From the NCBI RefSeq assembly GCF_030028105.1, contig NC_092376.1:170839613-170903612 (forward strand): a stretch of DNA of 64,000 nucleotides. Direction: 5' to 3'. The position numbers and the translations under genes were made by a program. Origin of the DNA: Mobula birostris (lineage: Eukaryota). The notes beneath the pieces were generated by a model. It was not told the DNA's origin and did no database searches. It worked only from the letters and a program-made list of their open reading frames with translations. Shown here one piece after another: positions 3,106 to 50,788 of this stretch (position 1 is the stretch's first letter; each line of letters opens with the position of its first letter).

Positions 3106-3757
3106 TGTTAGATATTGGGTAATGTCAGGTAAATGGAGACTTTACATTGGTTTCCTGGACCAGACCCACTGCCACAATCACCACACACCTTCTCTCATGT
3201 CCATGCTGACCAATACTGAGCACATTCTACACATTAATGACAAGGTCCCGAGAGTCACTGGGCATCAGTGTAGAGACGCCACCCCAGACACTGTAAGGCA
3301 GTTAAAAGCTCTTAAAATTAAATTTCAATGGCAAATCTTTGAAAATCTCAAATTTTAAAATACAAGCAACATGCTTAAAACACGTGACTGAAGTTCAACT
3401 GAGAAATTCCTTCTCCTTTCCCCATCTTAAACCAGACCTGAACTGGGTCGGATTAGAGAGTGATACTTCAGTGTACTATTGGGAATCCCAGCAATTAGTG
3501 TTGCAACTGTGAATTAGTCACAATGAGACTGGACTGTCGATGTAAAATGGCTTTATTCAGCATGATAAGAGACGTTTTAGAGAAATTCTCAAAGGAATCC
3601 CGCTGAACTCAAAGTGCATTGATGTTTTCCACTGCTTAAGCACAAAAATAATAGCATGTGATTAAATACAGTTTTAATGGTTGTGATTGCATATTCTCCT
3701 TCAAAAAAGGGGGTGAAAAAGTTAAATCATCAGGAGTATTTGATAGCTCTGTGCCTG

Positions 3758-7260: not shown

Positions 7261-7268
7261 TGTGCCTG

Positions 7269-7650
7269 TACCCACTGGAGTTCAGAAGAATGAGAAGGGA
7301 TCTCATTGAAGCCTACCAAATATTGATAGGCCCAGGTAGTTGGTCATGGAGAGGTTGTCTGCAATGGTGGGGGAATCTAGGACCAGAGGGCACAGCCTCA
7401 GAAATGAAGGACATGCCTTAAGAACAGTGATGAGGAGGAATTTCTTTAGGAAGAGTAGCGTGAATTTGTGGAATTCATTGCCGTTTACAGCTGTGGAGAC
7501 CAAGTCATCGGGTATATTTAAAGCGGAGGTCAATGACGGACATAAAACATTACAGGAGAAGTCATGAGAATCAGGTGTGTATGGAATGTATATCAGCCAT
7601 GATCTTGAGCAGTCTCGATAAGCCAAATTCTGCTCCAATGCCTCATGCTC
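7269..7650 (+). mobile_element. CR1 3' fragment interrupted by the hAT insertion
   Basis: Removing the hAT joins ...atagctctgtgcctg to tacccactggagttcagaagaatgag, restoring the CR1 RT C-terminal motif (LYxLEFRRMR). Confidence 0.7.
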
Positions 7651-8984: not shown

Positions 8985-9033
8985 ATGAACTCTCAACTGC
9001 GTCTCTACATGTTCTTTCTTTTCTCTGCACTTA
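8985..9033 (+). CDS. Tentative leader (signal peptide) exon of gene B
   Basis: ATG-initiated hydrophobic MNSQLRLYMFFLFSAL, 49 nt, ending in phase 1 as the D1 exon requires. The donor gtttcc is weak and the same AG could instead be an acceptor. Confidence 0.3.
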
Positions 9034-9225
9034 GTTTCCGATATTGCCAGCACTCATCGTGACAGGGCTGAAAGGATGTGTGAGAAATCCCAAACAATTT
9101 TAATCAGAAACTGTGAATGGAATCAGAACTCACAACTTCCTGAAAATTAATTTTCCATCTGTTCCTCATGACACAGATCACACTGAGAAACTGTTGTCTG
9201 ATTATTTTTACCTTTCCATTTACAG

Positions 9226-9570
9226 GAAGTGGGAATTCTATTTACTTTCTCCATCAGGAAGGGAACTTTGTATTGAAGGGACCAGACAATCCTGGAAGTG
9301 ACTCCATTGATTTGGAATGGAGGCCACACACAGGACAACAAACCACAAAGCGATTGGCCACTTTTCACAGAGAAGATCAGCGGTGGGCCGTAAAATGGAG
9401 TGATGAGTTCAGTAAAATACCAGACATTTCCCAGAGGTTACATGTGGACTGGGGTACCCTTAATCTGAGAATCAGGGAGCCCACCTTTCAACTTGCAGGA
9501 CTGTTCACCTGGAATCAGACACAGTCCGGTGGGAAAATCCCGAGACAGTGTGAGATATTTGGGATCAAAG
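9226..9570 (+). CDS. Gene B D1 exon (V-like Ig domain lacking the canonical B- and F-strand cysteines)
   Basis: Acceptor ccatttacag|, donor |gtatgt, 345 nt. Reads EGNFVLKG...LEW...LNLRIREPTFQLAGLFTW...RQCEIFGIK. An alternative acceptor exists at 9257. Confidence 0.8.
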
Positions 9571-12500
9571 GTATGTTGGTTAATGAGTAGAATGGGTTCA
9601 AAAACATAATTTTCTTGTGACTATTTCTTCAGATTTATCACATAATGTTGGAATTGTGTCTGTATATTTCCTGTAAATGCCTGCAAGAAAACAAATCTCA
9701 AGTTAGTATTGGTGACAGATGCATTCTTTGTTAATAAATTTACTTTGAACAGTGATCCTCTTACCCAGAATGCAGCGTAACATGAATTATGTATTAAAAT
9801 TGGTGAGTAACAATATTTGAGTCATTTATTTGGTTAGTTTTGTATAAACGTTGCTGCAGAGTTGGAGGTGATGGGATTGAACTTGTGGTGAGATTTGAGG
9901 AAAATGGCTCTGGTCTGAATATCTAAACTACAGCTCATCTGTGACAAAATCTCTGATTTTGAAATTGGAATGGCAGTGGAGGTGCTCATGCTCAGCAAAA
10001 TTACCCATATTGGCATTGAAGAAAATGTTGAGATTTTGACACATGAACAGCTTTATGTAGAAGTTTGAATCTGCTGTCACTATTTCCCAGCTCTCCCACC
10101 TGGTGATCTGTTTTAAGCCTTCTCCTGTGGAATAATGGGAAATTACTGAACTGATGAAAATATGAATAATTTACAAACGGCTCTAAGATTTAAGACATAA
10201 TTTTTTATTCATATGCTAAGATATATGTAGATCATCAAACTCCAAAACACTAAATTGATATTAAGTTACTGGAACATAATTCCTTCAGATAAACTGAGCA
10301 CAGTTGGTCAGTATTTGACTAACTATCTGTTTGTAGGGAAATGACAATTCTGCCTGGAGCAGTTCAGAGAGTCTGTGGGGAACTGAACCACACATCATGT
10401 GTCTGTTTCCACAGTTGAGGCCGACTCACAGAGTCCTGTAGTGGACAGTGACGTCACCCTCAGCTGTACCATCTCCAGACTCCCAGAGACCGTCAGTCTC
10501 CACTGGAAACCAAGAGGCTCATCTCAGAGGAGCAACAACACTGATCAGATTCACCTGAATAACACCGTCTGTCTGATGGTCCGACATGTTGGAACAGGAG
10601 ATCCCAGTCTGTACACATGGGAAGTGCAGGAAAATGGCTCCATTGTTCTCACTGGAGACACCAATATTGGAGTGGATGACCGTAAGTCCAAAGTTAACTG
10701 ACATTAGGTATGAAATAGTTGTTGATTATAAACTGTTCCACATATTACATAAGAACATAAGAAATAGGAGCAGGAGTAGGCCATCTGATCCGTTGAGCGT
10801 GTTCTGCCATTCATGGCTGATCAGAACATGGACTCATCTCCACCTACCTGTCTTTTCCTCATCACCCTTAATTCCCCTACTATGCAAATATATATCCAAT
10901 CTTGTCTTAAATATATTTACTGAGGTAGCTTCCACTGCTTCATTGGGCAGAGAATTCCACAGATTCACTCTGCTTTGGGAAAAACAGTTCCTCCTCATCT
11001 CCATCCTAAATTTACTCCTGTGAATCTTGAGGCTATGTCCCCTTCTTCTTGTTCCATCTATCAGTGGAAACAACTTTCCTGCCTCTATCTTATCTATCCC
11101 TTTCATAACTTTTTATGTTTCCCTAAGATATCATCTCATACTTCTGAATTCCAGCAAGTACAATCCCAGGCAACTCAATCTCTCCTCATAGTCTAACCCT
11201 GTTATTTCTGTAATCAACTTGGTGAACCTCCTCTGCACTGCCTCCACAGCCACTGTATCATTACTCAAATAAGGAGATCTGAACCATACGCAGTACTCCA
11301 GATGCGGCCTCACCAGTACCCAACGCAGTTGCAGCATAACCTCTCTGCTCTTAAATTCAATCCCTCTAGCAATGAAGGCCAACATTCCATTTGCTTTCTT
11401 GATAGCCCGGTGCACTTGCAAACCAACCTTTTGTGATTCACGCACAAGCACTTCCAAGTCCTTCTGCACAGCAGAATGTTGCAATCTTTTACCATTTAAA
11501 TAATAACCTGGTCTTCCATTTTTCCTTCCAAAGTGGATGACCTTGCATTTACCAACATTGTACTCCATTTTCCAGATCCTTTCCCACTCAATTAATCTAT
11601 CTTTATATCTCTCTGCAGACTCTCCATATCCTCTGCACAATTTGCTTTTCCACTCAATTTAGTGTCATCAGCAAACACGACACTACACTCGATCCCCTCT
11701 TCCAGATCGTTAACCTATATCATGAACAGTTGCTGGCCCAGTACCGACCCCTGTGGCACACTGCTCACCACAGATTCCAGAGAAACACACATGTATTGCA
11801 ACACTCTGCTTCCTATTGCTTAACCAATTCTCTATCCATGCTATTACATCACCCCCAACTCTATGCATCCTTATCTTATGGATAAGTCTTTTATATGGCA
11901 CCTTATCAAACGCCTTCTGGAAACCTAAGTACTTAACTCCATCTGTTCCCCTCTATCTGCTGTGCTTGTTATATCCTCAAAGAACTCCAGTAAGTTTGTC
12001 AAACAGGGCCTGCCTTTGCTGAATCCATGCTGCGTCTGCTTGATGGATCCATCTCTTTCCAGATGCCTTGCTATTTCTCCTTTAATGATAGCTTCAAGTA
12101 TTTTCCCAACTACAGATGTTAATCTAACTGGCCCTATAGTTACCTGCATTTTGCCTACATCCTTTATTGAACAGTGGTGTCTGCAGGGACCTGCCCAGAG
12201 TCCAGAGAATTTTGGTAAGTTATCACCAAGGCCTCAACTATAACCTCTGCCATTTTTTTCAGTACCCTGGGATACATCCCATCAGGACTAGAAGACTTGT
12301 TTATCTTTGGGTCCTCAAGTTTGCTCAGCACTACCTCCTTAGTGATTGTTATTATATCGAGGTCCTCACCTCCCATCACATCGATATAATCTCTCTTTGG
12401 CATGGTAGACTTCTCCTCCACCATGAAACTGACACAAAATAGATATTCAAAGCCTTGGCCATTTCCTCATTACCCAATATCAATTTCCTCTTCTCGTCCT

Positions 12501-15500
12501 CCAAGGGACCTACATTCATTTTGGCCACCCTTTTCATAATCATAGTCATAGCCATAGTCATACTTTATTGATCCCGGGGGAAATTGGTTTTCGTTACAGT
12601 TGCACCATAAATAATGAAATAGTAATAAAACCATAAATAGTTAAATAGTAATATATAAATTATGCCAGGAAATAAGTCCAGGACTAGCCTACTGGCTCAG
12701 GGTGTCCGACCCTCCAGGGGAGGAGTTGTAAAGTTTGATGACCACAAGCAGGAATGACTTCCTATGATGCTCTGTGTTGCATCTCGGTGGAATGAGTCTC
12801 TGGCTGGATGTACTCCTGTGCCCAACCAGTACATTATGTAGTGGATAGGAGACATTGTCCAAGATGGCATGCAACTTGGACAGCATCCTCTTTTCAGACA
12901 CCACCGTCAGAGAGTCCAGTTCCATCCCCACAACATCACTGGCCTTACGAATGAGTTTGTTGATTCTTTTGGTGTCTGCTACACTCAGCCTGCTGCCCCA
13001 GCACACAACAGCAAACATGATCGCGCTGGCCACCACAGACTCGTAGAACATCCTCAGCATCGTCCGGCAGATGTTAAAGGACCTCAATCTCCTCAGGAAA
13101 TAGAGATGGCTCTGACCCTTCTTGTAGACAGCCTCAGTGTTCTTTGACCAGTCCAGTTTATTGTCAATTCGTATCCCCAGGTATTTGTAATCCTCTACCA
13201 TGTCCACACTGACCCCCTGGATGGAAACAGGGGTCACCGGTACCTTAGCTCTCCTCAGGTCTACCACCAGCTCCTTACTCTTTTTCACATTAAGCTGCAG
13301 ATAATTCTGCTCACACCACGTGACAAAGTTTCCTACCGTAGCCCTGTATTCCGCCTCATCTCCCTTGCTAATGCATCCAACTATGGCAGAGCCATCAGAA
13401 AACTTCTGAAGATGACAAGACTCTGTGCAGTTGTTGAAGTCCGAGGTGTAAATTGTGAAGAGAAAGGCAGACAAGCCCACTTTATATAATTATAAAAATG
13501 TTTAATATCCGTTTTTATATTTTCTGCTAGTTTATTTACATAATCTATCTTCTCTTTCTTTATTGCTTGCTTAATGATTCTTTGTTGCTTTTTAAAGTTT
13601 TCCCAATTTTCCAGTTTCCTACTATACTTGGCAACTTTGTACACATGAGCTTTAAGTTTGATGCCTTTCTTTATTTCTTTAGTTATCCATGGCTGACTCT
13701 CCCCACCCTCATTTCACTTGCTTTTAACTGGAATATACGTTTGGTGAGAGCTGTGAAAAATCTCTTTGTTAGTCTTCCACTGTTCTTCAGCCATCCCCCA
13801 ATATAGCCTGGTTCCCAGAACTACCCTATCGAATTCTTCCCTCATCCCATTGTAGTCTCCTTTGTCTAGGCATAATACTGTCATGGTCTGGTCCGTGAAG
13901 TCCGCACTCTGGTTCACGGTCCGGTCCATCGATCCTTATTCCAGGCTTTCCAGTTGTCCCTTGTCCTGTTGTGTGCCTTAATTGTGGCACGTGATTCTTA
14001 TTTTGGGCTGGCTATGTAAACAGCTCCTGGGTTCAGCTTCAGTGGCTGGGAGGCGACTTGGCAGTCGGCTGATGAGTGCTGAGCAGGAACTGGTTCTGGT
14101 CCGAGGGACAACCAACCAAACTGCTGGGGGGTTGTGGGGAACAGTCTGTGGGAATATTGACCGACGGCCTGTATAGCTCCAGAACAATAGTCGTATACGG
14201 TTCCTTGAAAACTCTGATAGGATGGCAGGGAGGGAGAATGATGGTGACAGCAATAGCACGGAGTTTGAGTAGGAAGAGGTTGTGAGAAGGACTAAGAACA
14301 GGAAGGTGAAGGGTCGGAAGAGAATGAAAGGAGTTGGGTCTAGTGTAGGTGGATCGGAAAGTGAGGGAAGAGAAGTTGAGGAGAAGGGCCCGAGGGCAAA
14401 ATTGCTAAATGTAGTGGTAAGATTTGAGGGAGAAGGGGGAGTAAAGAAAATTGATCCACTTAAGCTAACAAAAATCATTAGAGGGTAAGTAGGGGAAGTG
14501 AACCATGCAAGAATTTTAGGCGATGGAAACCTGCTGATAGGATGTAAAACTGAAGAGCAGGTGGAGAAGGCAATGAAGGTGACTACTGTTGGGAAAGTTA
14601 AAGTGTCCAGGGTTGTAAGAGCTGGAGCACAAAGGGTCAATTGGTTGCAAGGAGGTGATATCTGGGTTTCCCCTCAGTGTTAATATGAAGGAGCTAGTGG
14701 AGAACTTGAGGATGAGGAATAGTTCAGTGAAGAGTGTGAAAAGAATGACAAGGGAACAAAAAGGAGACTGAAACTGTTCTGGTAGAATTTGAGGATAAGG
14801 TGCCTCCAAAGGAGTTAAAATTTGGATTTCTAAGATACAGTGTAAGAGAATATATATCAAAACCTATGAGGTGTTTCAATTGCTAGGAGTTTGGGCATGT
14901 GGTCAAAGTGTGCAAAAGAAAGAGAAGATGTGCAAGGTGTGGTGGGGAACACGAATACAGAAAATGTGGAGAGGGAGTGAGACTAAAGTGCTGTAATTGT
15001 GGAGGTAACCATAGTGTAGCGTACTGGGGATGTGAAGTGTTGAGAAAAGAGGTGGAGGTGCAGCAGATAAGAGTGAAGGAAAAAGTCTCATATGCTGAGG
15101 CAGTCATGTTGAAAATGAATGAGGGAGGATGTAGCAAAGAGCAAGCGGCAGCTAAAGGAGGGCAAGATAAGAAGAATGCATGGATAGAGAAGAAGAAATT
15201 GGTGACCTTTATAGCAGGAGTGGTAAATGCAATTTATGAGTTCAAATCTAAAACTGGAAGGATTCAGATTATTGTGAAAGCTGCAGAGCACCATTTGGAT
15301 ATGATAGGATTAAAATGGGAAGAAGTAAACGATGAACTCAGGGTAGAGCCAAGTCAGGAGACAGTATGTGTGGGTTGATATTACTAATAATTTTACTTCT
15401 TCAATTGAATGCAAGAAGCCTGATTGCTAACGGACAAGGTTTCAAGCAGTTTATAGCTAGTAGAAGGGAAAAGCCAGATACTGTGTGTATCCAGGAGACC

Positions 15501-18500
15501 TGGTTAAAAACTAATTTGGATTTTGTTTTGTATGGTTATGTGGCAGTAAGGCGAGACAGGAGAGAGGGGGGAGGAGGAGGATGTGCAACTTATGTAAAGC
15601 AAGGTATTCCTTATAGAATACTAGGTATAGGAAGTGAACAAAAGTATGTGGTAGTAAAAGTATAGGCTGTAAGGAAAGAGTTGGTGATTGTGAATTATTA
15701 TAATCCATGCAAAATACTAGAGTTAAACAAGCTTGAGGGGATAGAAGGGCAGAATAGCAGTAACGTTGTTTGGTGTGGTAATTTTAATGGACATTATGTA
15801 TTATGGAGGAGTGACGGAACAGACATCAATGGTCAGGTAATAGAGGAGTTGCCAGATGAGAAGTATTTAGTGTGCCTAAATGATGGCAGTAGTACTAGAA
15901 TTGATGTTAATACAGGTAAAGAGTCTGTGCTTGATCTTACATTAGTATCAAACTCCATTGCATCAGTGTGTGATTGGTTAGTGTACTAAGAAGGAACTGT
16001 AGGGAGTGATCATTACCCAAGCGGGTGCGAGATAAGTATTTCTGCCTCATTGGTCACAGAGAATACAGGTGGGAAATGGATCCTTGAGAAAGCCAATTGG
16101 GAGAAATTTCTGGAAAAATGTGACAGATGTCTAAGTCAGGTCAGTGATGGAATGGACGTAGAAACACTTGACAGCATATTAAAACAAGGTATAATATCAG
16201 CTGCATTAGAATCCATTCCTTAAAGTAAAGGAAGAACAAAGAAGAGAGTAATACCATGGTGGGATGATAATTGTAAGGAAGCAGTGAGAAATAGAAATAT
16301 GGCACTTAAACTGGTTAAAAGAACTCATAATTTCCAACACATGATTCAGTACAAACAAGCTCAGGCAGTAGTAAGGAGGACAATAAGACATGCTAAAAGG
16401 ATGCACTGGAGAAAGTATTGTGATTCAATTGGAAACACAACTCAGTAGGAGAGGTGTGGGGGATGATAAGAAGGATGGGAGGGGACAGGAGAGAATGGAG
16501 GTACCCAGTTCTGGGTGATGGAAATGTGACTGCAGTAACAAATAAGGAAAAGGCAGAGTTGTTGGCAAACACTTTTGTTGTGGTACATAGTTCTGATAAT
16601 TTGTCTGAGAAGGTAAAAAGAGGTAGAGAGAGAACAAAAGCTGAAAATATGGAGGCTTTATGCAGAAAAACTAACCTTGATGGTGTGCAAGATGTCCCTT
16701 TCAGCATGGGAGAATTAAGAAAGGCACTAGATAAATCAGGAAAGACTGCACCAGGTAAAGATGAAATATGTTATAGTATGATAAAACACTTGAGTGAAGG
16801 AAGTCTGGAGAAACTACTGCTTCTGTATAACAAAGTCTGGGATGAAGGGAGAATACCAGGGAGCTGGAAAGAGGCAATAATTATTCCAATAAGGAAACCT
16901 GGAAAAGATGCCAGCAGGCCAGGAAACTACAGGCCAATTGCCTTGATGTCACATGTATATAAACTTCTGGAACGGATGATAAATGAGAGGTTAGTGTACT
17001 TCTTGGAAAGTAGAGGTATGGTGGCTACAGATCAAAGCGGGTTCAGGAAAGGAAGGAATACTATGGATTCAGTGTTGTGTCTAGAGGATGAAATAAGAAA
17101 AGCTGAAGAAAATAAAGAGACAGTGGTTGCAGTTTTCTTATGTTGAGAAAGCTTATGATATGTTATGGAAATAGGGGCTCCTAATCAAGCTATATTTAAT
17201 GATGATGATGATGATGATTATGAAGACACGTAGTCCTCTTTTTTTGTCATTTAGAAATGCATGCTTTAAGAAATGATACATTATTTCATCCGGTGTGATA
17301 TCACAAAACACAGGACAAACCAATACTGAAAAAACTGACAAAACCACATAATTATAACGTGTAGTTATAAATAGTGTGACAATACCATAATTTGATGAAG
17401 AAGTCCGTGAGCATAGTAAAGTTCAAAGTTTCTCAAATATCCCACATCTCACGCAGACGGGGGAAAGAAGAAAAACTGTCCCTGCCATGCCGACCACAAT
17501 CCGACTCTGAGTCATCCGAAAACTTCGAACTCTGATCAGCTCTCTGACACCGAGTACTGAGCGCCATCTCTGTCTGAATGATTCGACTTCCTTCTCGGTC
17601 GCCAAAAGCAGGCAAGGCCAGGGATTCTGAGGTCTACCCTCCGAAAGATTCCCAACCACACAGTAACGACAGCAGCGGACGGACGTTTCAGAAATTTCGC
17701 CAGATGTTCCTCTGTGCTTTCACGTCCTTTCTCCATCAAATCAGTATTGTCCATGACCCCTATTTAACAGATACGATATAATTTTTCACTGGAGGGCTGC
17801 GCACACGCAGACGCATTGCCATCTTCTCCTTCCGTTAATGGGAATCGGGGGGGGGTGGGGGGGGGCGATGTTCAATTGGGTTAAGGACTATCTGAAAGAG
17901 AGAACTATTCAGGTGAAGATAGGATCAGAGCCATAAAGCCAGTATGTTGTAGAAAACGGGATGCCTCAGGGGAGTGTAGTGAGTCCAACTTTATTCTCCA
18001 TTTTGATAAATGATATATTCGTAAATATTCCACCGGAAGTGGGGAGGTCATTGCTTGCAGATGACGGGGCTTTGTGGAAAAGAGGGAGAAATATTGAACA
18101 TATAGCTACGAAAATGCAAGATGGAATTAATCGGGTTGAAGAGTGGGGGACAAAGTGGGGTGTTAAATTTTCAGTGGAGAAGTCAAAAGCCATGTTCTTT
18201 ACAAGGAAAAATTCAGGGGACTTAATTTGAATCTGTATGGAAGTAACCTGGAGAGAGTTGAAAGTTTTCGGTTTTTGGGAGTCCCCTTTGACTTGAGATT
18301 AACATAGGGAGAACATGTTAGGTATGTAGTTACTGAAGGTTAAAATGTGATAAATGTCATGAGGTATCTTGCTGGATTGGATTGGGGTGCTGATTTTGCA
18401 TCACTGAAGTATATTTATATAGCATTAATAAGATCAAGATTAGACTATGGAAGTATTGTATATGGGTCAGCAAAATCTGTGCTAGCAAAACTGGATATCG

Positions 18501-39500: not shown

Positions 39501-42500
39501 TCGTAGGGTGCTTAAGATTATAAAGAAAGCACATTTACAAATTTCAGCTTTATCAAACAGTTATTTAGATAAAGAAAAGAAATAAAAATAAGGGGCCCAT
39601 TACAGTTAAAGCAGTGTAAATGTCCACATGGTGTTGGACCTCGTATCTTCCAAACCCTGGATATGACTGTTATTCACGGCACTGAATTCTCATCACCAGT
39701 CACTGGTTGAGGTTCCTATCTTAGATACCTTCATCTCGTGAAGCATACCTTGCAATTGTGTCTTCTCTTTGGATCGAATGCTACAGCCGTCTCTCTCGAT
39801 TTTCTCTTGTCTGTACCTCCCACCAAAAAGGCCATTCAACCCCCCCATGCCATCACAAATCTCTCTCCACCCAGCTCTCTTCAGAACTCCCTCCCAATTC
39901 CACTATCCTAATTGGCTGACACAACATTCCTAAATTGAACATCATTGCCCCTTATCTTTAGCCAAAGCCAGAAAATTCCACCAGCAGGGCTCACTGCTTT
40001 TACAGAAAGCTACTAGCAGTAGAAATCTTAACCAGGGCAATTCAATGAAATTTTTGAGGAAATTACCAGAAAAGTGGATGAAGGCTAGGCAGTGGATGTT
40101 GTCTACATGGACCCTAGTATGGCATTGGACAAGGTCCCGCATGGAAGCTGGTCAAGAAGATTCAGTCATTCAGCATTAAGGATGAGGTAGTAGATGAGAT
40201 TAGACATTGACTTTGTGAGAGAAACAAGAGAGTGGTAGTAGAGGGTTGCATCTCTGACAGGAGGCCTGTGACTAGTGGTGTGCCATAGGGAGCAGTGCTG
40301 GGTCCTTTGTTGTTTGTCATCTACAGTATATCAATGATCTGGGTGATAATGTGCTAAGTTGGATAAGCAAATATGTGAATGACACCAAGATTGGGAGTGT
40401 AGTGGGGCAGTGAGGAAGACTATCATGGCTTGCAGAACAATCTGCATCAGCTGGATAAATGGGCTGAAAAATAGCAGATGGAATTTAATGCAGACAAGTG
40501 CAAAGTTTTGCACTCAGTAGGACCAACCAACATAGGTCTTACACAGTGAAAGGTAGGGTACAGAGGATTATGATAGAACAAAGGGATCAGGGAATACAGG
40601 TATAGAGTTTGCTGAAAGTGGTGTCACAGGTAGATAGGGTCAGAAAGAAAGCTTTTGGCACATGGTCCTTCATAAATCAATGTATTGAGTACAGAAGAAG
40701 GAATGTTATGTTGAGGTTGTTTAAGACGCATGTAAGGCCAAATTTGGAGTATTGTGTGCAGTTTTGGTAACCTAACTACAGGAAAAATGTAAACGAGGTT
40801 GAAAGACTACAGAGAAAATTTACAAGGATGTTGCCAGTTCTGGAGGACCTGAGTTATAAGGAAAGAATGAAGAGGTTAGGACTATATTCTTTAGGATGTA
40901 GGAGATTGAGAAGAGATTTATTAGAGGTATACAAAATTATGAGGGATATAGATAGGCTAAATGCAAGCAGGCTTTTTCCACTTAAGGGTGAAAGCTGAGA
41001 AGTTTAAGAGGAACAGAGGAAAATGTCTTCACTCAGAGGGTTATGAGAAAGAAGAAAAAGCTGCCAGCACAAACGGTTCATGTGAGTTTGCTTTCAACAT
41101 TTAGAGAATTTTGGATAGGTACATGGATAATAGGAATATGGAGGGCTATGGTCCAGGTGCAGGTCCAGGTCACTGGGAGTAGGTAGTATAAGTGGTTTTG
41201 GCATGGATTAGATGGGCCAAAGGGCCTGTTTCTGTGCTGTACTTCTCTATGAAACTTTGAATTTAAAGAAAAAAACTGAAAGCATTTTAAGAGTTCTTCT
41301 CTGTCTGTACAGGGTTGGAAAATCAAAGACAGGAATCACGAAGGACAGGGAGGAACACAGAAGATGACTCCAACCTCGATGCAAATACAAACGAAATCCA
41401 GCCAATACAAGGTAACATCTTGACATCAGAAGAATTTTAATTTTGTGTCCCATTTGCTCACAGCAGGTTTGTCTTCCCTTTGTAGCTTAAAAGGACTTTC
41501 AGATATGGAAAAATTGTGGCATTATAAGACCATGAGATATAGGAGCAGAATTAAGCCATTTTCCCATCGAGTCAGCTCCTCCATTTCATCATTGCTGATC
41601 TATTTCCCTCTTGGCCCAATCTCCTGCCTTCTCACCATTTCCTTTCATGCCCTGACTAATAAAGTACCTATCAACTCTCAATGATTTAGACTCCAAGACA
41701 CCTGTGGCAACCTCTGGCTGAAAAAATTCCTCACATCTCTGTTCTAAATGGTTGTCCCTCTATTCTGTGTCTGTGTCCTGTGGTCTTAGACCCCCCCCCC
41801 CCCCGGCAACTCTACTCTTTTCTCTTTTGACGCCTTTCAGCATTCAATGGGTTTCAATGAGATCCCCCATAATTTTTTCTGAGTTCCATTGAGTTCAGAC
41901 ACAGAGCAGTCAAATGCTCCTCATGAGATGAGTCTTTCGATCCTGTATACAATTTTGTATAAACTGCCGGCCGGTAGGCAGTGCATCTGTGAGCCTGGTC
42001 ACTTATTAATACTGACACTCCAACCTCCTGACTGCTCCCTCGATCCTACCCCACCACTGACCTAGCCTTTCTGTCAGTGCTGCCCATTCATTGGCTTCAG
42101 CTCCCCCTCTGACATGCCAAAGACTGGGGTACGTTAGCCGAAAAAGTGCTGGATCAGAAAGCATTTGCTGTAGTTCTTGGCAGACAATAACCACGACTCA
42201 ACCTACTGCTGTTAAGATATGTCACATTTACCCATTAAAAAACCTGTTGAAGTTCATTCATTCTGTGTTACTGGAATTCAAAACTGGGAATTGACCTGGA
42301 CCTTCCATGATGTATTAATGTGTAGTCTGGTACAGCATGTTTCCACTAACTCTCTGAATTAATCCCCATATTATCATTGTAACATTAAATGCCTCCAGCA
42401 AACATTATTAATACTCTGATCGTACAGTATTTCTCCTCATGCTGATGGCTGTCATTATTAATAGGGCACTATTTTCTCAAGATACCCGAAGTTGCTTCTT

Positions 42501-45500
42501 GGAAATCGAGCCAATGATATGAAATGCTTCAATGATAGGATGCAAAATGGGGCTGAGAAGTGGCAAATGGAGTTCAGCCCGGATAATAAACCAGTGAGGT
42601 GGTTTATTTTGGTAGGTCAAGTACGATGGCAGAATATAGCATTAATGGTAAGACTCTTGGCAGTGTGGAGAATCAGAGGGATCTTGGGGTCCAAGTCCAT
42701 AGGACGCTCAAAGCAGCTTCACAGGTTGACCTTGTAGTTGAGAAGGCATACGGTACATTGGTCTTCAATCAATTCAATCAATTTTGGGATTTAGTTTAAA
42801 AGCCGAGAGGTAATGTTGCAGTTATTTAGGACCCTGGTCAGACCCCACTTGGAGAAATATGCTCAGCTCTGGTCGCCTCACTACAGGAAGGACACGGAAA
42901 CCATAGAAAGGGTGCAGAGGAGATTTACAAGGATGTTGCCTGGATTGGGGAGCATACATTATGAGAATCGGTTGAGTGAACTGGGCCTTTTCTCCTTGGA
43001 CCGACAGTGGTGGAGGTGGATACAATAGGGTCTTTCAAGAGACTCCTGGATGGATACATGGAGCTTAGAAAAATAGCGGGCTATGGGTAAGCCTAGGTAG
43101 TTCTAAGGTAAGGACATCTTCGGCACAGCTTTGTGGGCCAAAGGGCCTGTATTGTGCTGTAGGTTTTCTATGTTTCTGTGTTTCCAGGAACTAATGAGAT
43201 GCCGGAGCCTGAGACCAGACATATTGCTGAATATATGTCTGCGAGTAGGAAGGCAATACAAGAAGGTAATAGACCAATCTCTCATTCAATGAATTTCTCT
43301 CCTTGTACTTTTGTGAAATTACTCACTCAACAGTTTGCAGGTTTGCAATTAAAATGTATATTTAGAGAATTGAATCTCAAGCATGAATCTGACTGATCAA
43401 TCCAATACTCTGTCTAGTGTCGACTATCCTTCACTCCCTCCCAGTCTTCTTCATACAGCATAGGGCTCTCTCTGCATTCTACAACAGTCCAATGTAGATA
43501 AACCACAACACTTTACCGTATGGACAATCCGCGTTCAAATCCTGCTGCTGCCTGTAAGGAGTTTGTACATTCTCCCCGTGACCGTGTGTGTTTCCTCCGG
43601 GTGCTCTCGTTTACTCCCACAGTCCAAAGACGTACTGGTTGGTAGGTTAACTGGTCATTGTAAATTGTCCTGTGGTTAGGCTCAGATTAAATCAGGAGGC
43701 TGTTGGGCAGCGTGGCTCGAAAGGCTGAAAGGGCCAATTCCGCGCTGTATCTCAATCAATAAACAAATAAACACACACAATGTGATCATACTTCTGGTAA
43801 ATGGACAGCTTGGTTAGTGGCTGCAGAACAAGTCCACATCACCTGCCCTCTGAAAGTGACCATCCATTTCATGAGATCTCATCCACTATTGAATACCTCC
43901 ACCACACTTCAGCAGTACTTCAGTGTGTCTGGAATCACTGAATATGATCAGTCAAAGTGTCAGTGTAGTGTGAGAATGCCATATTAGACAGCATTGCTTT
44001 CTCTAGAAATTAGGTGATATTTCTGAATATGCATGAACAGCAGAGCAGGCTTTCTTGAAAAACCTGATTTTTTTAATAAAGCAGATCATTCTGATTTTTT
44101 AAAATATGAAAAATCTCTTTCCAAATTCTAGCTCTCTCCTTATATTATTTAATTCTTATTGTCCAAATCTAATTCTATGAATATATTTAATGATCTGGCA
44201 TCAACCAGTGGAGAATTCACATCGCTCATTTTGTCTGGGAATTCCCCACTGCAGTCCTCAATGACTCCTGTTTTAAACTCTGATCCTGTCTTGAAGTCTC
44301 TGCTGCAGGAAACATCCTTCCTGGAGCACTTTGTTGGAATCTGTTGGTTTCCATGAGATCCCCTCTTATTCCTATCAGCTCCAGAGCACATAAGCTGAAT
44401 GAACCCAAACTCTCCCCGTGCATCTCAATTCCAAGACATGATGTGACCATACAGATTTTCAGCATCTAATATGCAGCATCACAGGCTGAATTTATATCCT
44501 GGAGAATTATATATCCTGTGGAAATAAAATCAAGTCAGAGGTGAGAGAGGTGGCTGAATGAAAACAGAGAAAAATAAATGAATTGATCATGTTTTGAATA
44601 TATTCCATTTAATACATATGGAGCAACACAATCTGTGTTAGACCATAAGACCACAAGATATAGAAACAGAACTGGGCCATTTGGCCTATCGAGTATGATC
44701 TGCCATTTCATCATGGCTAATCTATTTCACTCTCAGCCACAGTATCTTGCCTTCTCTCCAGAATCCTTCATGCCCTCATTAATCAGGTTATGTGGTGCGG
44801 AAAGCATGGCAGTACAAGCTCGGACTGTGTTGGTTGTTGACACAAACAACACGTTTCACTGTACGTTTCAATGTTTCTATGTTCATGTACAAATGAAACT
44901 AATCTTTATCTTTATCATCTTTGTTTCTATTTTGTCCCTGCAGACACAGAGGAAAGTATTCATTATGCATCCATCTGCTTCGAGAAAAATGCGCCAGGTG
45001 ATAAAATTGTTTGATTTTTTAAAATTTTTTTTGTCAGGATGAGGATTGTTGGTGATGAGTCTGAAACGCTTTGGGGCCCTCATATGGCCGTCCTGAGGCA
45101 AAGCTCCTCACTCACCCCTTAACACACAGTGGGACAGTCAGCTGAGGCTCAGTCCATAACCCAGCCTTCTCTGTGCAGGTCCAGTCTCCCCCCACAGATA
45201 CAAGCATGAACATCTGGGCTGATATTGCAACACAACGTTGCAATGTTGCTGGTCGAGTGCCAACCCAAGGCACAGTTCTGTCCTCAGAAGACAGATAAAG
45301 TTAGTCAGCACAATTCTGAATTAGTAAATGTGACTTATGTCTGATCTCCTGTCCATATCATCAGCGTCATTAAAAATGCGAGCTGGTTTGACTTGATTTG
45401 ATTCGATGCAAATGATACATTTCACTGTGTCACTGTGTCAAATCAACCTAGTGCATGACGGCAACTTTTTGCGTTAAATCAAATCAACCAAAAGTGGAAA

Positions 45501-48500
45501 TTTCCGGAGACCAAACATTTTGATCCTGATTCTGATTCCTGTTCCAACATGTCGGTCCATGACCCTCTCTTATGTCAAGATGAGGCCACCTTCAGGGTGG
45601 AGGAGCAACTTTTTATATTGTGTCTGGGCAGCCTCTAACCTGATGGCATAAATATCAATATCTCCCCCTCCTTTCTTCTTCTATTCCCCACTCTGGTCTC
45701 ATACATCTTCTCACCTGACTATCCCCTCCCACTTTTCCTTTCTGCTATGGTCCACTCTCCTCTCCTATCAGATTCCTTCTTCTCCATCCCTTTATCTTTC
45801 CAACCCAGCTGGCTTCATTTTTCACCTTCCAGATATCCTAACTCCCCTTCCCCCACCTTTTTATTTTGGCATCTTCCCCTTTCCTGACGAAGGGTCTCAG
45901 CTCGAAATGTCGACTGTTTATTCATTTCCATAGATGCTGCCTGATCTGCTGGGTTCCTCCAGCACTTTGTATGTGTAGCCTTGGATTTCCAGCATCTGTT
46001 GACTTTCTCCTGTTTGATATTTCACTATCTGGTTCGATGCAAGTCTCCAATCTCTCGCTCTTCCATTCGACCTCAAAATCATCAGATAGAGGAGCAGGAT
46101 TTGGTCATTTGGCCCATCAGGTTTGCTCCACTATTCAAACAATGTCTGATTCTTTTCACAAATACATTCACCCTGTAATCCTTAAACCACTAAACAATCA
46201 AGAACCTATTAATCTCTCCCTTAAATATACCCAGTTTGGCCACACAGGCCACTGTGGAAATGAAATCACATTCACAATTCCTCACTGACCCTGAGTCATC
46301 CAAGAATCATGGAAAGTTTGGTTCATTTACAACTATCCCTATAGCTCACTGAGGTTAGTGTATGTTTTACCCAGATGGATGGAAAGAAGTTTTATGGAAA
46401 TTCAAAGTTCAAAGTACATTTATTATCAAAGTTTGGGGTGTCAGGGAGGGGTAGCACTTCTGGTGGGGGAACACGTCGCATCCTTTTCAAGGCGGTTAGT
46501 CCACCTTTAGTCCCTACTTGGCACTCAGCTCTCACCTGTGGCTCCCCGTAGCTGTTTGCATGCGACAGCGGCCACACCCCAGGCAATGGCTTTGACAAGC
46601 CAGCTAAACTAGGTGAGGGTAGCCGACGGGTCTCAAACCATTGGTGAGATAGGTAGTTGTCTATTCCAGCATGTGAAGACAGACTCCGGTGTATTGAGCG
46701 GACGAGACCAATGGAAGGTCCAACGGTCAAGAAGGCGATCTCTGCAAGCGTCCTGGAATGTGTAGAGCAGGAGAAGATACAGAAGACATCCTGGTCATCC
46801 ACTGTGCCTAGTCCCATCTCCAGCCGTCTCGACTCTGTCTTGCCACTGGATCCAGATGGGAATTGGGAAGAAAGAGTAAAACTGACGCTGCGCAACTCTC
46901 CCTCACTTAAATCCAAATCACACGCTAGTCCCAACACCATCTGGTGTCGAGGTCCTCATCGACGTGGACGATGGTCAAACAGGATGTATACTATATACAA
47001 CCTTGCGATTTGTCTCCTTACAGTCAGCCACAAATTGAAGTAACCACTTAAAAAAAAGACTGTCTAACATCCAATGAGTAGGAAAAAAACTTGTACAAAC
47101 AATAAGAGTAAGCAAATAACTTTCAGAACTGAAATTCACAATAGTGAGTCCACAGCCACAAAGCCACTCATCACGACAGCCATTTCAGGAGCCCATTAGT
47201 TGCAGGCTGCACCCTTTGTGCAGCCCAGGGACAAGTAAATTTCACTGGGCACCAAGCTGATCCAATCCATCCCTTGCCTCTGACCCCAACACCCTGACCA
47301 TTTCAATCTGGCCCAGCTCTTAAATCACCCAAACCTCAGGTTGTTCCTCATTCGCAGACCTGGGCCCTGCCACTTTGATACGCTCTCGGCCGATTCTCCC
47401 CATACCCAACCTTTCTAATTTGGCCCGGCACTTCAATCAATCAAACTGATTAAACGAGCAATTGAATTTTTTGCTTATGTTTTGTCAGGAGAGAGTAATG
47501 CAGTCACTTTAGGACATTTGTATTCTATTTGTCACTTCCTTTATCAGTGTGATCCACTACTGTCATCTTTTAATTGTGATGTTTGCAATTATCACAGGGG
47601 AGAGACATGCCGCACCATCCTCCAATCAAGTGTCAGATACTGTAAGTACATTGGTCTGTTGTTGAAGTACCAAGTCCAACAAATATTAATTTCCAGATCA
47701 AATTTGTGAAGTTGTTTACAGATCTAAACAGATGAAATATCAACTGGCTTAAATATACACTCAATGTCCACTTTATGAGGTACATCCTGCACCCAATAAA
47801 GTGGCCACTGAGTGTCTGATCATGACCTTCTGCTGCTGTAGCCCATCCATTTCAAGGTTCTGCACACCACCTTGGTGATGGCCTCCACTGGTCGAGGTCG
47901 ACCACGGATGTTGCAACCCAGCTGTTTGAAGTTGATATGGAAGCTAGAGCAGTACAATACGGAGAACAAGCTGTTGCCCATACAGCAGGCTCTCCCTCTC
48001 CATGCAGCTGATGAATCCAAAGGAATAGCAAAGTCTGAAGCTGTTTGGCACCAGCGGCTTTGGAGGAGTTGCCAGTCAAAAATGAATTCATTGTAGGGAC
48101 TTCGGGAATGCAGTTCCAGATTTTTCCTTGAGATTTACTCCTTCCCTATGAGTGGGTATAGCCACAAGGCAGTGGAGGTATGAAATCAGAGTTTTTCTTA
48201 TCCTAGATTAGCCGCCAACCACAGCTGATGAGCCCCATTTGCCCAAAATGACTGGTTTTAAGGGGCCAGTAACCTGCCTTTGCCCCTTCTCCTTTCAGTC
48301 CAAAGTGGTTCTGTCAAGCTTAGCAGCTAAGCCACACGTGAAAGCCAGGTGCTGGATTGTTGTCAAAGACTACAGTATTTGGGATGCATGTCATTGGGAG
48401 CATTTAGTAGGTAGTGGAAGCTTATACCCACTACCCTCCCACCACCTCCTTCACTGACTAGGACAACCTTAAAGAGCCATCATCTCTGTAACATGTAGTT

Positions 48501-50788
48501 GTTTGAGTTACTGTTGCCTTCCTGTCAGCCTGAACCAGTCTGGCCATTCTCCTCTGCTCTCTCTCTTTAACAAGTCATTTTTGACCACAGAACTACAGCT
48601 CAGTGATTTTTTTTTGTTTTTCACACCATTTTCTAACCTCTAGAGTAGTGGTCACCAAACAGTCGATCGCGATCGACCGGTCGATCTTTGAGACTTTCCC
48701 AGTAGATCCTGAAAAAAATCAAAAATAAATAGCATTATAAAATGAGTAATACTAATTCGAATAATAGTAATATAGGAATACTTTCGCTACTGAAAGCTGT
48801 TTGTAAAGAGAGATTGTTTCCAGGTTGCGGGTTTTTAGTTCCGTTATTTCTGCCCAATGCGCATGTGTGTAGCTCCCCCGCCACGCACCGCGTCTTCAGC
48901 ATAGCTTGTGCTGCATCAAAGTGACCAATTAGATTAGATAAGATTACAGAATGTCGCAAACATCAATATATGGCACTTGCTCGTGATATCCTGATAGCAT
49001 GGCGGAGGCTCCACGAAAGAAAGCGAAAACGTACAAATTCCATCCAGAATGGGAAGAGGAATTTCTATGTACCTTGGCGAAAGACAATTGTGTATGTATG
49101 TTGTGCCACCAAACACAAGCACTGACTAAAAGAGGGAATCTGGAGCGGCACCACAACACCAACCACCAGAAGCTTAAAGACACCTACCCCGCAAAGAGTG
49201 CAATTCGTGCTAGGAAAGTTAAGGAGCTGAAATCTTGGTTGAAGGCCCAGCAATCGTTTTCACAAAATGTGCTGCTCAAAATAAGGCTGCTATTGAAGCA
49301 TCATTTCGTGTAAGTCACCTTTTGGCTAAACACTAGAAGCCTTTTACAGATGGCGATTTATTCAAGGAAGCAATGGCCATTACCGCAGAGACTGTTATTA
49401 CTGACTTTAAAAACAAAAGCGACATCACAACCGCAATACATAATATACCGCTTGGCCCTGCAACAGTGACAAGGAGGGCAGAGTCACTGTCAGAGTTCGT
49501 GGATTGACTTGTCACTCGGTGAATATTTTTCACTCCAGTTCAATGAATCCCTGGATGTAATGCAAACAGCTCAGCTTGTTGTATTTGTCAGAATGGCTTT
49601 CCAGGATTTTATAACAAAGGAGGACTTGCTCACTCCTTTGCAATTAAAGGGGAGAACGAGAGGTGAGGAGGATATTTACAATGAGTTTAAAAAATATGTC
49701 CGTGAAAATGACATTCTCATTCATAAACTTGTGGCAATTACAACTGATGGGTGTGCATGGTGGTTTTATAGCACTAAAAATCAGTGCCTACTTTGGGTCA
49801 ACTTATCTATGTGAAATTGCATTTTCACAGATGAAAATTATTAAATCTAAGTCCAGGAGCTGTCTTACTGACAGACACCTCACAGACTGTCTCAGACTAG
49901 CTGTCTGTAGTTATGAGCTAAATTTCAGGGAACTAGCAGAAAGTATTCGGCCCCGGTCATCACACTGAGTGCAACAGTCAATTTTTACTCATTTATTTTT
50001 CGTGTTGAAATAAAATTAAATAATGAAACTTAGAATTAAAGGTGTGAAGTATTGTAATATTCTTAAAAAAGACAGCTATGGCCTGTTTGATATGCTAGTT
50101 ACAGTATTTTCTTCTTTGAATTAATTTGAAAGTCTGACAAATGTATTTTATGTAATTCAAATACAATTAGCCCAAATAAAAGGCCTCAGATTGGAAGTAC
50201 AATCTGAGCTGTTTTCTCTCTGAACGGTTTAGTAGGTAGATCTTGCTTTTCACTAAGGTCGAAGTAGGGGATCTTGAGCTTAAAAAGGTTGCTGACCACT
50301 ACTCTAGAGACTGTTGTGTGTGATAATCCCTGGAGATCAGAAGTTTCTGAGATACTCAAATCAATGGTACAGCACCAATATTCCACAGTCAAAGTCACTT
50401 AGATCACATTTCTTCCCCATTCTGAACAACAACAAATGAACCACTTGACCATGTCTGCATGCTTTCATACATTTGATGGGAATGAAGGGTTATGGGGAAA
50501 AGGCAGGTAGGTGGAGATGAGTCCATGGTCAAATCAGTTATGATCTTATTGATTGGCAGAGCAGGCTCAATGGGACAGATGGCCTACTCCTGCTCCTATT
50601 TCTTATGTTCTTATTGTGTTGCTGCAACATGATTGGCTGATTAGATATTTGCATTAATGAGCCGATATACTGTACCTAATAATGTGGTCACTGGGTATAA
50701 CTGGTTTTTCTTTCTCCTTCAGAACCTGCCTTCAAATGACAATGTCTCATCTGTTATCTATGCACAGATAACAAAAAAACAGAAATGA
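9226..50788 (+). CDS. IgSF receptor gene B (spliced): V-C2-V-C2-TM-cytoplasmic tail with two ITIMs; CD4/LAG-3/G6F-like architecture
   Basis: Nine GT-AG exons join in one open frame ending at TGA 50786-50788: 9226-9570, 10415-10681, 23148-23483, 24724-24993, 28701-28808, 41313-41411, 44944-44997, 47598-47641, 50723-50788. Total 1589 nt, plus a phase-1 leader. Confidence 0.85.
10415..10681 (+). CDS. Gene B D2 exon (C2-type; F-strand Cys replaced by Trp)
   Basis: Acceptor tgtttccacag|, donor |gtaagt, 267 nt. Reads SDVTLSC...SLHW...NNTVCLMV...SLYTWEVQE. Confidence 0.92.
12534..13478 (-). mobile_element. 5'-truncated Rex1/Babar-type LINE inserted in the CR1
   Basis: ORF 12689-13480 with LFTIYTSD, QKFSDGSAIVG (degenerate YADD), YKYLG and RLYFLRRLRSF-like motif. 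AATAAA plus a (CATAGT)n tail at 12541-12570. Confidence 0.8.
14050..19857 (+). mobile_element. Full-length I-group (Nimb-like) LINE with ORF1 and EN-RT-RNase H ORF2, degenerate
   Basis: 15-bp TSD agcttcagtggctgg (14035-14049 and 19858-19872) and a (GAA)n tail. ORF1 has three zinc knuckles (CARCGGEH, CCNCGGNH). EN: LQLNARSL, CIQETW, GSDHYP. RT: PQGSVVSPTLF, LADD. RNase H: FTDGSK, PAHSGIMGNETADRLAK. C-terminal CDLCQETETVEHILISC. Confidence 0.9.
17202..17834 (-). mobile_element. Short non-autonomous retroposon inserted in the Nimb RT
   Basis: 6-bp TSD ttaatg (17196-17201 and 17835-17840), (ATC)n tail, 5' end ggagaagatggc. Removing it restores the RT sequence GLLIKLYLMGIG...MFNWVKDYL. Confidence 0.75.
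22195..22735. mobile_element. Tc1/mariner-type MITE
   Basis: Inverted ends of the ...tccactttattaggtac / ...aaagtggcc type. Same family as 47756-50697 and 51523-52107. Confidence 0.6.
23148..23483 (+). CDS. Gene B D3 exon (V-type)
   Basis: Acceptor tgtcttgcag|, donor |gtagga, 336 nt. Reads ELKLIC...KWTW...GNFRLRIVPVQFEDAGVYTCSLG, with the canonical DxGxYxC motif. Confidence 0.93.
23610..24492 (-). mobile_element. CR1 3' fragment in the D3-D4 intron of gene B
   Basis: catagaaacatagaaa tail. RT C-terminus LEYCAQFWLPHYRKDVETIERVQRRFTRML. Confidence 0.9.
24724..24993 (+). CDS. Gene B D4 exon (C2-type, WxC motif)
   Basis: Acceptor tgtttccacag|, donor |gtaagt, 270 nt. Reads VTAEPPDAVTEGDTVTLSC...LVW...RKWTCVLI. 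Confidence 0.93.
25545..26270 (-). mobile_element. Rex1-type LINE 3' fragment
   Basis: ORF 25691-26209 with KNKELVVDYR, FKFLSVHI and QQRLFHLRQLRKF. (AATTG)n tail. Confidence 0.8.
27269..28471 (-). mobile_element. Solo LTR, 1203 bp
   Basis: TGTCA/TGACA termini. Perfect 5-bp TSD gcctg (27264-27268 and 28472-28476). Confidence 0.9.
28701..28808 (+). CDS. Gene B transmembrane exon
   Basis: Acceptor gttttgacag|, donor |gtaagg, 108 nt, phase 1-1. Reads DYSFKHTTVVITGGPALLLIIILVMVLCLRKRKVT: uncharged hydrophobic helix followed by a basic stop-transfer stretch. Confidence 0.92.
31293..40035 (-). mobile_element. Gypsy LTR retrotransposon provirus, degenerate, with both LTRs
   Basis: Diverged direct repeats at 31293-32066 and ~39275-40035. 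Polypurine tract next to 32066. tRNA-Pro-like PBS (tggggtgcctgtccagg on the - strand) near 39255-39272. PNMA-like gag (36628-37149). RT (FKGVFSTDEFDVG, YASPI), RNase H (ILHTDANCEG) and integrase (HDDVGYLG, ITDHYTRYAQAFPTKDQ) in Gypsy order. Confidence 0.85.
37227..38603 (+). mobile_element. Solo LTR inserted in the Gypsy gag region
   Basis: TGTCA...TGACA termini. 5-bp TSD atcaa/atcga (4/5 match). TATA-like tataag near 37358. Confidence 0.85.
41313..41411 (+). CDS. Gene B cytoplasmic exon 1
   Basis: Acceptor ctgtctgtacag|, donor |gtaaca, 99 nt, phase 1-1. Reads GLENQRQESRRTGRNTEDDSNLDANTNEIQPIQ. Confidence 0.78.
42530..43180 (+). mobile_element. CR1 3' fragment
   Basis: WQMEFS and LVRPHLEKYAQLWSPHYRKDTETIERVQRRFTRML. 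gttttctatgtttct tail. Confidence 0.85.
43510..43765 (+). mobile_element. V-SINE (HE1-like) tRNA-derived SINE
   Basis: B-box-like gttcaaatcc followed by the conserved core tttcctccgggtgctc...ctcccacagtccaaagac. Confidence 0.7.
44944..44997 (+). CDS. Gene B cytoplasmic exon 2 (membrane-proximal ITIM IHYASI)
   Basis: Long pyrimidine tract ending tccctgcag|, donor |gtgata, 54 nt, phase 1-1. Reads DTEESIHYASICFEKNAP. Confidence 0.82.
45560..46005 (+). mobile_element. Probable Penelope-like element 3' remnant
   Basis: Degenerate EEQxxIxxLGSLxPDG-type coding end, then a pyrimidine-rich tract and the tail gatgctgcctgatctgctgggttcctccagca. Confidence 0.5.
47598..47641 (+). CDS. Gene B cytoplasmic exon 3
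   Basis: Acceptor aattatcacag|, donor |gtaagt, 44 nt, phase 1-0. Reads GERHAAPSSNQVSDT. It supplies exactly the phase change needed to read the last exon's ITIM. Confidence 0.75.
47756..50697. mobile_element. Tc1-type MITE expanded by internal insertions
   Basis: TA-flanked inverted ends (cactcaatgtccacttt / aatgtggtcactggg). The body is colinear with 51523-52107 once the inserts are removed. Confidence 0.6.
48646..50301 (+). mobile_element. Internally deleted hAT-Charlie/SPIN-like transposon (GTF2IRD2-like transposase remnants)
   Basis: TIRs tagtggtcaccaaac and ggttgctgaccacta. Perfect 8-bp TSD ctctagag (48638-48645 and 50302-50309). Fragments: BED-like CVCMLCHQ...NLERHHNTNH, LQFNESLDV, and FGSTYLCEIAFSQM. 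Confidence 0.9.
50723..50788 (+). CDS. Gene B terminal coding exon (distal ITIM VIYAQI)
   Basis: Acceptor tttctccttcag|. Phase 0 reads NLPSNDNVSSVIYAQITKKQK*. AATAAA motifs follow at 51217 and near 51273. Confidence 0.82.
   Translation, partial: NLPSNDNVSSVIYAQITKKQK

Follow-up and report, generated by a model that had tools for sequence, protein, structure and literature searches.

The ectodomains of CD4 and LAG-3 are recognized by a V-C2-V-C2 order of immunoglobulin (Ig) domains and by a WxC motif on strand F of domains D2 and D4 (Takizawa et al. 2023, PMC10768021). The tail of CD4 is encoded by several exons and carries a Cx(C/H) Lck motif, and that of LAG-3 occupies a single exon and carries (F/Y)xxL(D/E) (PMC10768021). 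The DICP receptors of bony fishes have D1-D2 or D1a-D2a-D1b-D2b ectodomains with either an immunoreceptor tyrosine-based inhibitory motif (ITIM) or a charged membrane segment, and are linked with the MHC (major histocompatibility complex); their D1 and D2 domains retain Cys23 and Cys104, next to DICP-specific cysteines, and the doubled units have been proposed to stem from read-through into a gene downstream whose signal peptide was lost (bioRxiv 10.1101/2021.06.11.448072). G6F-like molecules combine four Ig domains with a YxN motif and, in teleosts, an ITAM (immunoreceptor tyrosine-based activation motif) (Ohashi et al. 2010; Hughes et al. 2012, PMC3528668). Here we analyse a 64,000-nucleotide (nt) stretch of the Mobula birostris genome (contig NC_092376.1, positions 170,839,613 to 170,903,612; hereafter the window, with positions counted from its first letter), in which two neighbouring genes, "Gene A" and "Gene B", had been reported, the latter as a dual-ITIM inhibitory receptor on a V-C2-V-C2 scaffold. 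We conclude, with a probability of about 80%, that positions 437-50788 of the + strand instead represent exons 3 to 15 of one eight-Ig-domain ITIM receptor gene.

A candidate eight-domain receptor gene

Thirteen exons were identified on the + strand of the window, each with an AG acceptor and a GT donor and with phases that are consistent throughout. The three exons of "Gene A" encode Ig domain 2 (437-706, C2, with LYQCEV), Ig domain 3 (1268-1606, V) and Ig domain 4 (1685-1945, C2, with KWTC). The first two of these are phase 1/1, domain 2 aligns from residue 142 with P0235, a 987-amino-acid (aa) RefSeq "uncharacterized protein" of M. birostris, and domain 3 is colinear with the same protein. 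The series finishes in a strong phase-1 donor, G/GTGAGT, at 1945/1946, which would feed the exon at 9226. This exon has a phase-1 acceptor and is internal. It encodes Ig domain 5 (9226-9570), a V domain without the canonical Cys pair that had been taken for D1 of "Gene B" and is 74% identical to Rhinoraja P0168. Ig domain 6 follows (10415-10681, C2, with Trp in place of the F-strand Cys, LYTWEV), then Ig domain 7 (23148-23483, V-set, Pfam E 1.1e-6), Ig domain 8 (24724-24993, C2, with the WxC motif as KWTC) and an exon for the stalk, the transmembrane segment and the stop-transfer sequence RKRKVT (28701-28808, 63-71% identity to homologues). With single "Gene B" exons as queries, Pfam recognized a V-set domain in D7 and generic Ig domains in D6 and D8, and matched no family with the D5 exon alone. 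Introns among the D2-D4 exons are very short, about 80-560 nt, and those of the second four-domain unit measure 0.8-12.5 kb.

The cytoplasmic part begins with exon 41313-41411 (GLENQRQ...IQPIQ), followed, among the exons reported for "Gene B", by 44944-44997, 47598-47641 and the last coding exon 50723-50788. Phase 1/1 is shared by the four Ig exons of "Gene B", the transmembrane exon and the exons at 41313-41411 and 44944-44997; exon 47598-47641 passes from phase 1 to phase 0, and exon 50723-50788 begins in phase 0 and terminates at the stop codon. All nine exons of the original prediction, which had estimated some 530 codons in consistent phases, were recovered with AG/GT sites and with a polypyrimidine tract ahead of every acceptor. 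Spliced, they give 528 aa, colinear with dozens of predicted elasmobranch proteins far beyond chance, and the junction peptides RKRKVT/GLENQ, FGIK/V and ELITVR/V (the slash marks the boundary) each span an exon junction as described. The direct join of 41411 to 44944 in the tail did not hold, as it misses an exon: tblastn uncovered an extra 78-nt, phase 1/1 cytoplasmic exon at 43188-43265 (TNEMPEPETRHIAEYMSASRKAIQE), between 41313-41411 and 44944-44997, which is also found in P0235 and in Hypanus sabinus P0231. Since the closest predicted relatives contain this exon, the direct join would be a minor isoform at best.

The case for a single gene is carried by the product obtained when the two sets of exons are joined. 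The junction of 1945 with 9226 reads PYYQECS-G-SGNSIYF, i.e. ...PYYQECS-G-SGNSIYFLHQEG..., and the counterpart in P0235 is PYYQELSGSGNSIYF; about 20 further eight-Ig proteins share this junction. With exon 43188-43265 included, the joined product comprises 844 aa in the window and aligns end to end with residues 142-987 of P0235 at 88% identity, with 2 gap columns; identity to H. sabinus P0231 (LOC132405565) is 80%. The P0235 gene covers about 70 kb of the Mobula assembly, a scale similar to that of the window gene. Moreover, the landmarks of the window product reappear in about 30 eight-Ig proteins from rays and sharks, namely YxC in D2, WxC in D4, the D4-D5 junction (PYYxExSG...IYF), YTW in D6 and WxC in D8, and all of these are carried by the nurse-shark protein V9NJF3 (P0239). 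Because the joined product aligns over its full length with P0235 and because the landmarks recur, we read the window as containing a single eight-Ig-domain receptor gene.

The full product would be a receptor of the type I membrane class, some 985 aa long, with the leader and the first Ig domain encoded upstream of the window. Its architecture, (V-C2)x4, would amount to a tandem pair of four-domain units of the CD4/LAG-3 type. One transmembrane helix would come next and then a tail of 119 aa, for which the last part of the transmembrane exon and five further exons code. "Gene A" and "Gene B" would be the two halves of this gene. The V-C2-V-C2 modules of the original prediction are indeed present, but they form part of an eight-domain whole, of which "Gene B" is the 3' half. 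For the window itself, the corrected gene model, in which the two reported genes become one, is the main value of the analysis.

If "Gene B" were an autonomous four-Ig gene with its own promoter and leader, and "Gene A" a separate, secreted or truncated neighbour, a leader would be expected upstream of 9226. The original prediction had assumed one, and family members with four Ig domains and their own leader do exist, such as Amblyraja P0170 with its W-type second domain and ITIM tail. Yet a scan of 3000-9225 for an ATG, a hydrophobic stretch and a phase-1 donor returned weak candidates only, with poor donors, and a sensitive tblastn search with ten family leaders gave no match upstream of 9226, although leader exons are short and poorly detected by similarity. 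The nearest relatives of the D5 exon are all internal, standing after D4 in Mobula P0002 and P0235, Hypanus P0231, Rhinoraja P0168 and Pristiophorus P0171; in Leucoraja P0169, a further relative of this exon, the predicted model begins inside the domain. For "Gene A", no transmembrane exon of its own was found in the window, and its last exon ends in the strong phase-1 donor already mentioned. We regard two separate genes as improbable and retain the single eight-domain gene. The window contained no transmembrane exon with a lysine and no further family exons past 50788.

This copy appears intact. The reading frame stays open through 2.5 kb of coding sequence in 13 exons, free of stops and frameshifts, and the splice sites are canonical; each of the 11 columns that are invariant in the family alignment is preserved, and private changes occupy 5 of 223 otherwise invariant sites (2.2%), at the low end of the range of 1.8-8.0% seen in 12 relatives. 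Decay of an unprocessed pseudogene paralogue of the Mobula-type gene could be read from several departures at conserved sites, namely Y>H in the YxC of D3, two changes in D6 (G>D and Y>C) and, following the middle tail tyrosine, V>A; and also from the lack of an identical protein among the database matches, so that its own genome may lack an annotation for the window copy. Against this stand the open 13-exon frame with its canonical splice sites and the low rate of private changes; we rejected the pseudogene on the private-substitution count and consider it very improbable. The Trp that replaces the F-strand Cys of D6 is not damage either, since it is a mark of the orthologous domain in rays and in sharks alike.

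Cytoplasmic tail and predicted signalling

The 119-aa tail holds three tyrosines, in AEYMSA, IHYASI and VIYAQI. A motif scan bore out the dual ITIM of the original prediction: IHYASI, in cytoplasmic exon 3 (44944-44997; EESIHYASICFEK at 44949-44987), and VIYAQI, in the last coding exon (50723-50788; VSSVIYAQITKKQK at 50744-50785), both match the consensus (S/I/V/L)xYxx(I/V/L) and lie 38 residues apart. Two ITIMs occur in 0.23% of shuffled tails. A scan of the 119 aa for other signalling motifs found no Cx(C/H), no (F/Y)xxL(D/E), no ITAM and no YxN.

Both ITIMs are kept in 40 of the 160 family-related proteins that were fetched, and 17 of the 160 have instead a membrane segment of the WI..GYLLVKL type, with a lysine, and a short tail. 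Sister genes share a near-identical ectodomain but differ in having the membrane lysine and the short tail, and for this reason the family probably consists of paired inhibitory and activating receptors. The best-supported reading is that the window gene would be an inhibitory member of such a paired-receptor family, acting through SHP-1/SHP-2. The mode of action of ITIMs is established (Daeron et al. 2008, cited in PMC10768021). By analogy with that established biology, engagement of a ligand would lead Src-family kinases to phosphorylate both ITIM tyrosines, and the tandem SH2 domains of SHP-1/SHP-2 would then dock and reduce the signalling of ITAM-coupled receptors that the cell also bears.

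Throughout the family the tail is built of modules, in the order GLENQRQ...LYSNA...IQQMQ (containing YxN), ...AEYMSV..., ...EDIHYGSISF... and ...SSVIYAQI. The window copy departs from this layout. In tail exon 1 it has D where most relatives have the tyrosine of YSN, so that the YxN tyrosine is lost, as it is in P0235; and it reads AEYMSA, versus AEYMSV in its closest relatives. The tail order is also kept in relatives from sturgeon, eel and Paramormyrops, with YSN, an LxYxxF-type motif and a terminal VVYASV or VIYASV. Some eel members carry a lysine in the membrane segment, and the tail of sturgeon P0034 contains YDN and YEN.

Individual tail modules are duplicated or skipped in some predicted family models. 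Heptranchias has two copies of the ITIM-1 exon, Pristiophorus two of tail exon 1 and Leucoraja two of the AEYMSV exon (P0151, P0176, P0182), suggesting that exons of the tail were shuffled or duplicated in tandem.

Fold and relationship to described receptor families

We modelled with AlphaFold the second four-domain unit of Mobula P0002 (XP_072120630.1), which is 65% identical to "Gene B", from an alignment of 49 four-domain units. The model reached a mean predicted local distance difference test score (pLDDT) of 86.6 and a predicted template modelling score (pTM) of 0.84. In a Foldseek search against the Swiss-Prot models, the top 17 matches to this unit were all CD4 or LAG-3, across four domains and with E about 1e-19, and LAG-3 and CD4 also ranked first against the PDB. 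This comparison by AlphaFold and Foldseek, proposed alongside the original prediction, thus places CD4 and LAG-3 as the top matches, as judged from the relative's model. With VIA-align, the V-C2 pair superposed on D3-D4 of rat CD4 with a Z score of 15.8 and a root-mean-square deviation of 2.6 Å over 169 of 177 residues, and on D1-D2 of human CD4 at about 3 Å. The continuous strands that had been claimed to connect V and C2 domains appear in the model as long single strands, FGVKV (112-116) lying within strand 105-119 and ELITLKV (312-318) within strand 306-321; these two correspond to FGIKV and ELITVRV of the window product.

Profile searches point the same way. The family profile matched LAG-3 with E 2.5e-12 and CD4 with 6.5e-9, in alignments that span the V-C2 junction, and it aligned the WxC of the family with the WGC of LAG-3 domain 2. 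The WxC claimed for the F strand of D4 of "Gene B" (D8 in our numbering) is thus present as KWTC and is aligned with the corresponding LAG-3 motif. The D8 exon as a whole gave a weak full-length match to LAG-3 domain 2. Since multi-domain proteins such as CEA and pIgR reach similar total profile scores, the sequence evidence taken by itself is merely suggestive. In phmmer searches of the PDB with single exons, D7 matched MXRA8 and JAML, D8 matched LAG-3 weakly and the D5 exon matched nothing; the MXRA8/JAML lead was dropped because the four-domain model ranked CD4 and LAG-3 first.

The window gene and its relatives share with CD4 and LAG-3 the V-C2-V-C2 units, the continuous strand running from V into C2, the strand-F WxC in the membrane-proximal C2 domain and, as in shark CD4 and LAG-3, a first V domain encoded on a single exon. 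There are also differences. CD4 and LAG-3 consist of one four-domain unit and the ray protein of two; WxC is limited to the even-numbered, membrane-proximal C2 domains D4 and D8 (KWTC) and is missing from D2 (YQC) and D6 (YTW); the tail of the window gene is spread over six exons, in contrast to the single exon of LAG-3, and has neither the CD4 Lck motif nor the LAG-3 motif; and, unlike CD4 and LAG-3, the ray family is a multigene family with members that have charged membrane segments. Sequence identity to CD4 and LAG-3 is 11-20%. Because its tail is neither CD4-like nor LAG-3-like, we assign the family to the structural group of CD4 and LAG-3 and to neither of the two named lineages. The original prediction of an inhibitory counterpart within this group agrees with the ITIMs and with the fold searches that rank CD4 and LAG-3 first; with two ITIMs, a matching fold and no CD4, LAG-3 or ITAM tail motifs, "inhibitory molecule within the CD4/LAG-3 structural group" is a fair description of the window gene.

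Several points weigh against our reading of the locus as one eight-domain inhibitory receptor gene. The evidence for the proposed junctions consists of splice signals and of colinearity with proteins that are themselves predicted (by Gnomon) and belong to other species or paralogues. As every Ig exon is phase 1/1, shorter isoforms with four Ig domains or with skipped tail exons are possible. The structural model describes the unit of a 65%-identical Mobula relative rather than the window's own product, so that the match to CD4 and LAG-3 is transferred from that relative. Finally, the recruitment of SHP phosphatases, the ligand and the cell type are what we infer for this gene, and its signalling may differ from the family norm because of the lost YxN tyrosine and the AEYMSA variant.

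The family may also be viewed from the side of the innate receptors of bony fishes, as a cartilaginous-fish branch of DICP or G6F-like rather than as a separate relative of CD4 and LAG-3. By description, the family resembles DICP: a V-type D1 and an Ig-like D2, single or doubled, with ITIM, charged-membrane and secreted forms, in a clustered multigene family. The architecture, the inhibitory, activating and secreted forms and an origin of doubled units by read-through all match the published account of DICP, and relatives of the ray family are present in coelacanth, bichir, sturgeon and eels. G6F-like is likewise similar by description, being a four-Ig V-C2-V-C2 type I receptor, and most ray-family tails have LYSN, that is, a YxN (Grb2-type) motif like that of G6F and G6F-like, to which YDN and YEN in sturgeon P0034 may be added. 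The details agree less well. The first V domain of each unit (here D5) has no Cys pair and D6 has Trp for Cys104, versus the Cys23 and Cys104 of DICP; the charged membrane residue is an arginine in a bowfin DICP figure legend and a lysine in the ray family; G6F-like signals by an ITAM, whereas the window gene has ITIMs, its tail showed no ITAM, and its YxN is lost. These comparisons with DICP and G6F-like are by description. Neither name was attached to any of about 300 retrieved relatives (0 matches), no G6F-named match came from a profile search, from cluster look-ups or from a search for homologues of sturgeon P0034, and no mapping of coelacanth P0066 to the published DICP scaffolds is on record. 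We regard an assignment to DICP or G6F-like as possible but less likely than not. Tentatively, the family might represent a third branch of the CD4/LAG-3 group, greatly expanded in cartilaginous fishes and surviving as remnants in basal bony fishes, in which four- and eight-domain receptors form pairs of inhibitory (dual-ITIM) and activating (membrane-lysine) members. In that same reading it may be the long-sought shark counterpart of DICP or G6F-like, and its ligands might be of MHC type or belong to the matrix.

Family members in other fishes and genomic surroundings

The V exon of domain 7 (23150-23482), searched with phmmer against 1.8 billion representatives, retrieved a series of cartilaginous-fish proteins with 44-63% identity. 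Cluster look-ups and homologue searches gave members from rays and skates (Mobula, Hypanus, Hemitrygon, Pristis, Leucoraja, Amblyraja, Rhinoraja and Narcine), from sharks (Scyliorhinus, Chiloscyllium, Carcharodon, Cetorhinus, Heterodontus, Heptranchias, Pristiophorus, Rhincodon, Stegostoma and Ginglymostoma) and from the chimaera Callorhinchus. More distant relatives, with 25-30% identity, were found in sturgeon, paddlefish, bichir, eels, Paramormyrops and coelacanth. In the databases the family goes under "uncharacterized protein LOC..." or under loose automatic names (obscurin-like, VCAM1-like, CEACAM5-like, butyrophilin-like). The closest predicted models are P0235, P0230 and P0002 of M. 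birostris, LOC132405565 and LOC132405566 of H. sabinus, LOC127570086 of Pristis pectinata, LOC116978408 of Amblyraja radiata, LOC121281175 of Carcharodon and the nurse-shark "obscurin-like protein" V9NJF3. These ray and shark models match the window gene in eight-domain order, in the transmembrane segment and in the six-part layout of the tail with its two ITIMs.

The window gene is identical to no retrieved protein, the best match being the 88% of P0235. The concern that automated annotation might miss a gene of this kind was not borne out, as close relatives have full-length RefSeq models in Mobula, Hypanus, Pristis, Amblyraja, Carcharodon and others. We conclude that the window gene is a real, apparently intact and ordinary member of an already annotated, uncharacterised family, and that the single copy in the window brings no new principle. 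Our literature searches (shark paired ITIM receptors; nurse-shark obscurin-like protein) found no description of the family. Sharks and rays thus hold a large, computer-annotated and undescribed family of probable paired receptors on a CD4/LAG-3 fold, with a tail layout conserved as far as sturgeon and eels, which could be used as an outgroup or missing link for the origins of CD4, LAG-3, G6F and the innate receptor families of fishes.

Two predicted models deserve separate mention. Scyliorhinus canicula P0001 (LOC119965406, 1710 aa) has four four-domain units, or 16 Ig domains, ahead of an ITIM tail, and may represent either a genuine giant receptor or neighbouring genes that the annotation pipeline fused. 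In Mobula hypostoma P0194 (LOC134349884), the odd C-terminal 28 residues match window positions 9583-9666 on the - strand, just past the D5 exon, with 57% identity, and the RefSeq model probably ends in a mis-called exon instead of the D4-D5 join.

Synteny was inspected in two species. In Callorhinchus (MU249844.1), family genes adjoin a gene whose product has PH, ArfGap, RhoGAP and RA domains, and in the sturgeon Acipenser ruthenus (OV754670.1) a relative lies between an M1 aminopeptidase gene and a gene for a product with PA, Peptidase_M28 and TFR_dimer domains. In neither of the two did we recognize an obvious CD4/LAG-3 or MHC class III neighbourhood.

The window itself has 0 N runs and about 42% G+C, resembles a transposon-rich vertebrate genome, and contains only the window gene and transposons. 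That the introns are full of transposon remnants, as had been noted, is correct. The D6-D7 intron harbours a non-long-terminal-repeat (non-LTR) retrotransposon of the long interspersed element (LINE) class at 14749-19703 (+; endonuclease to RNase H at 15.3-19.3 kb), with an endonuclease at ~15.3 kb, a reverse transcriptase at 16.4-18.2 kb and an RNase H at ~19 kb, and the D4-D5 intron contains a hAT-type transposase remnant at 4285-6596 (+; 4.3-6.6 kb; Dimer_Tnp_hAT, E 1.4e-10). Downstream of the gene, open reading frames for endonuclease, reverse transcriptase and RNase H mark a second non-LTR retrotransposon at 56051-58141 (+). Positions 48987-49310 contain a second hAT-type piece, which carries a Spin-doc zinc finger.

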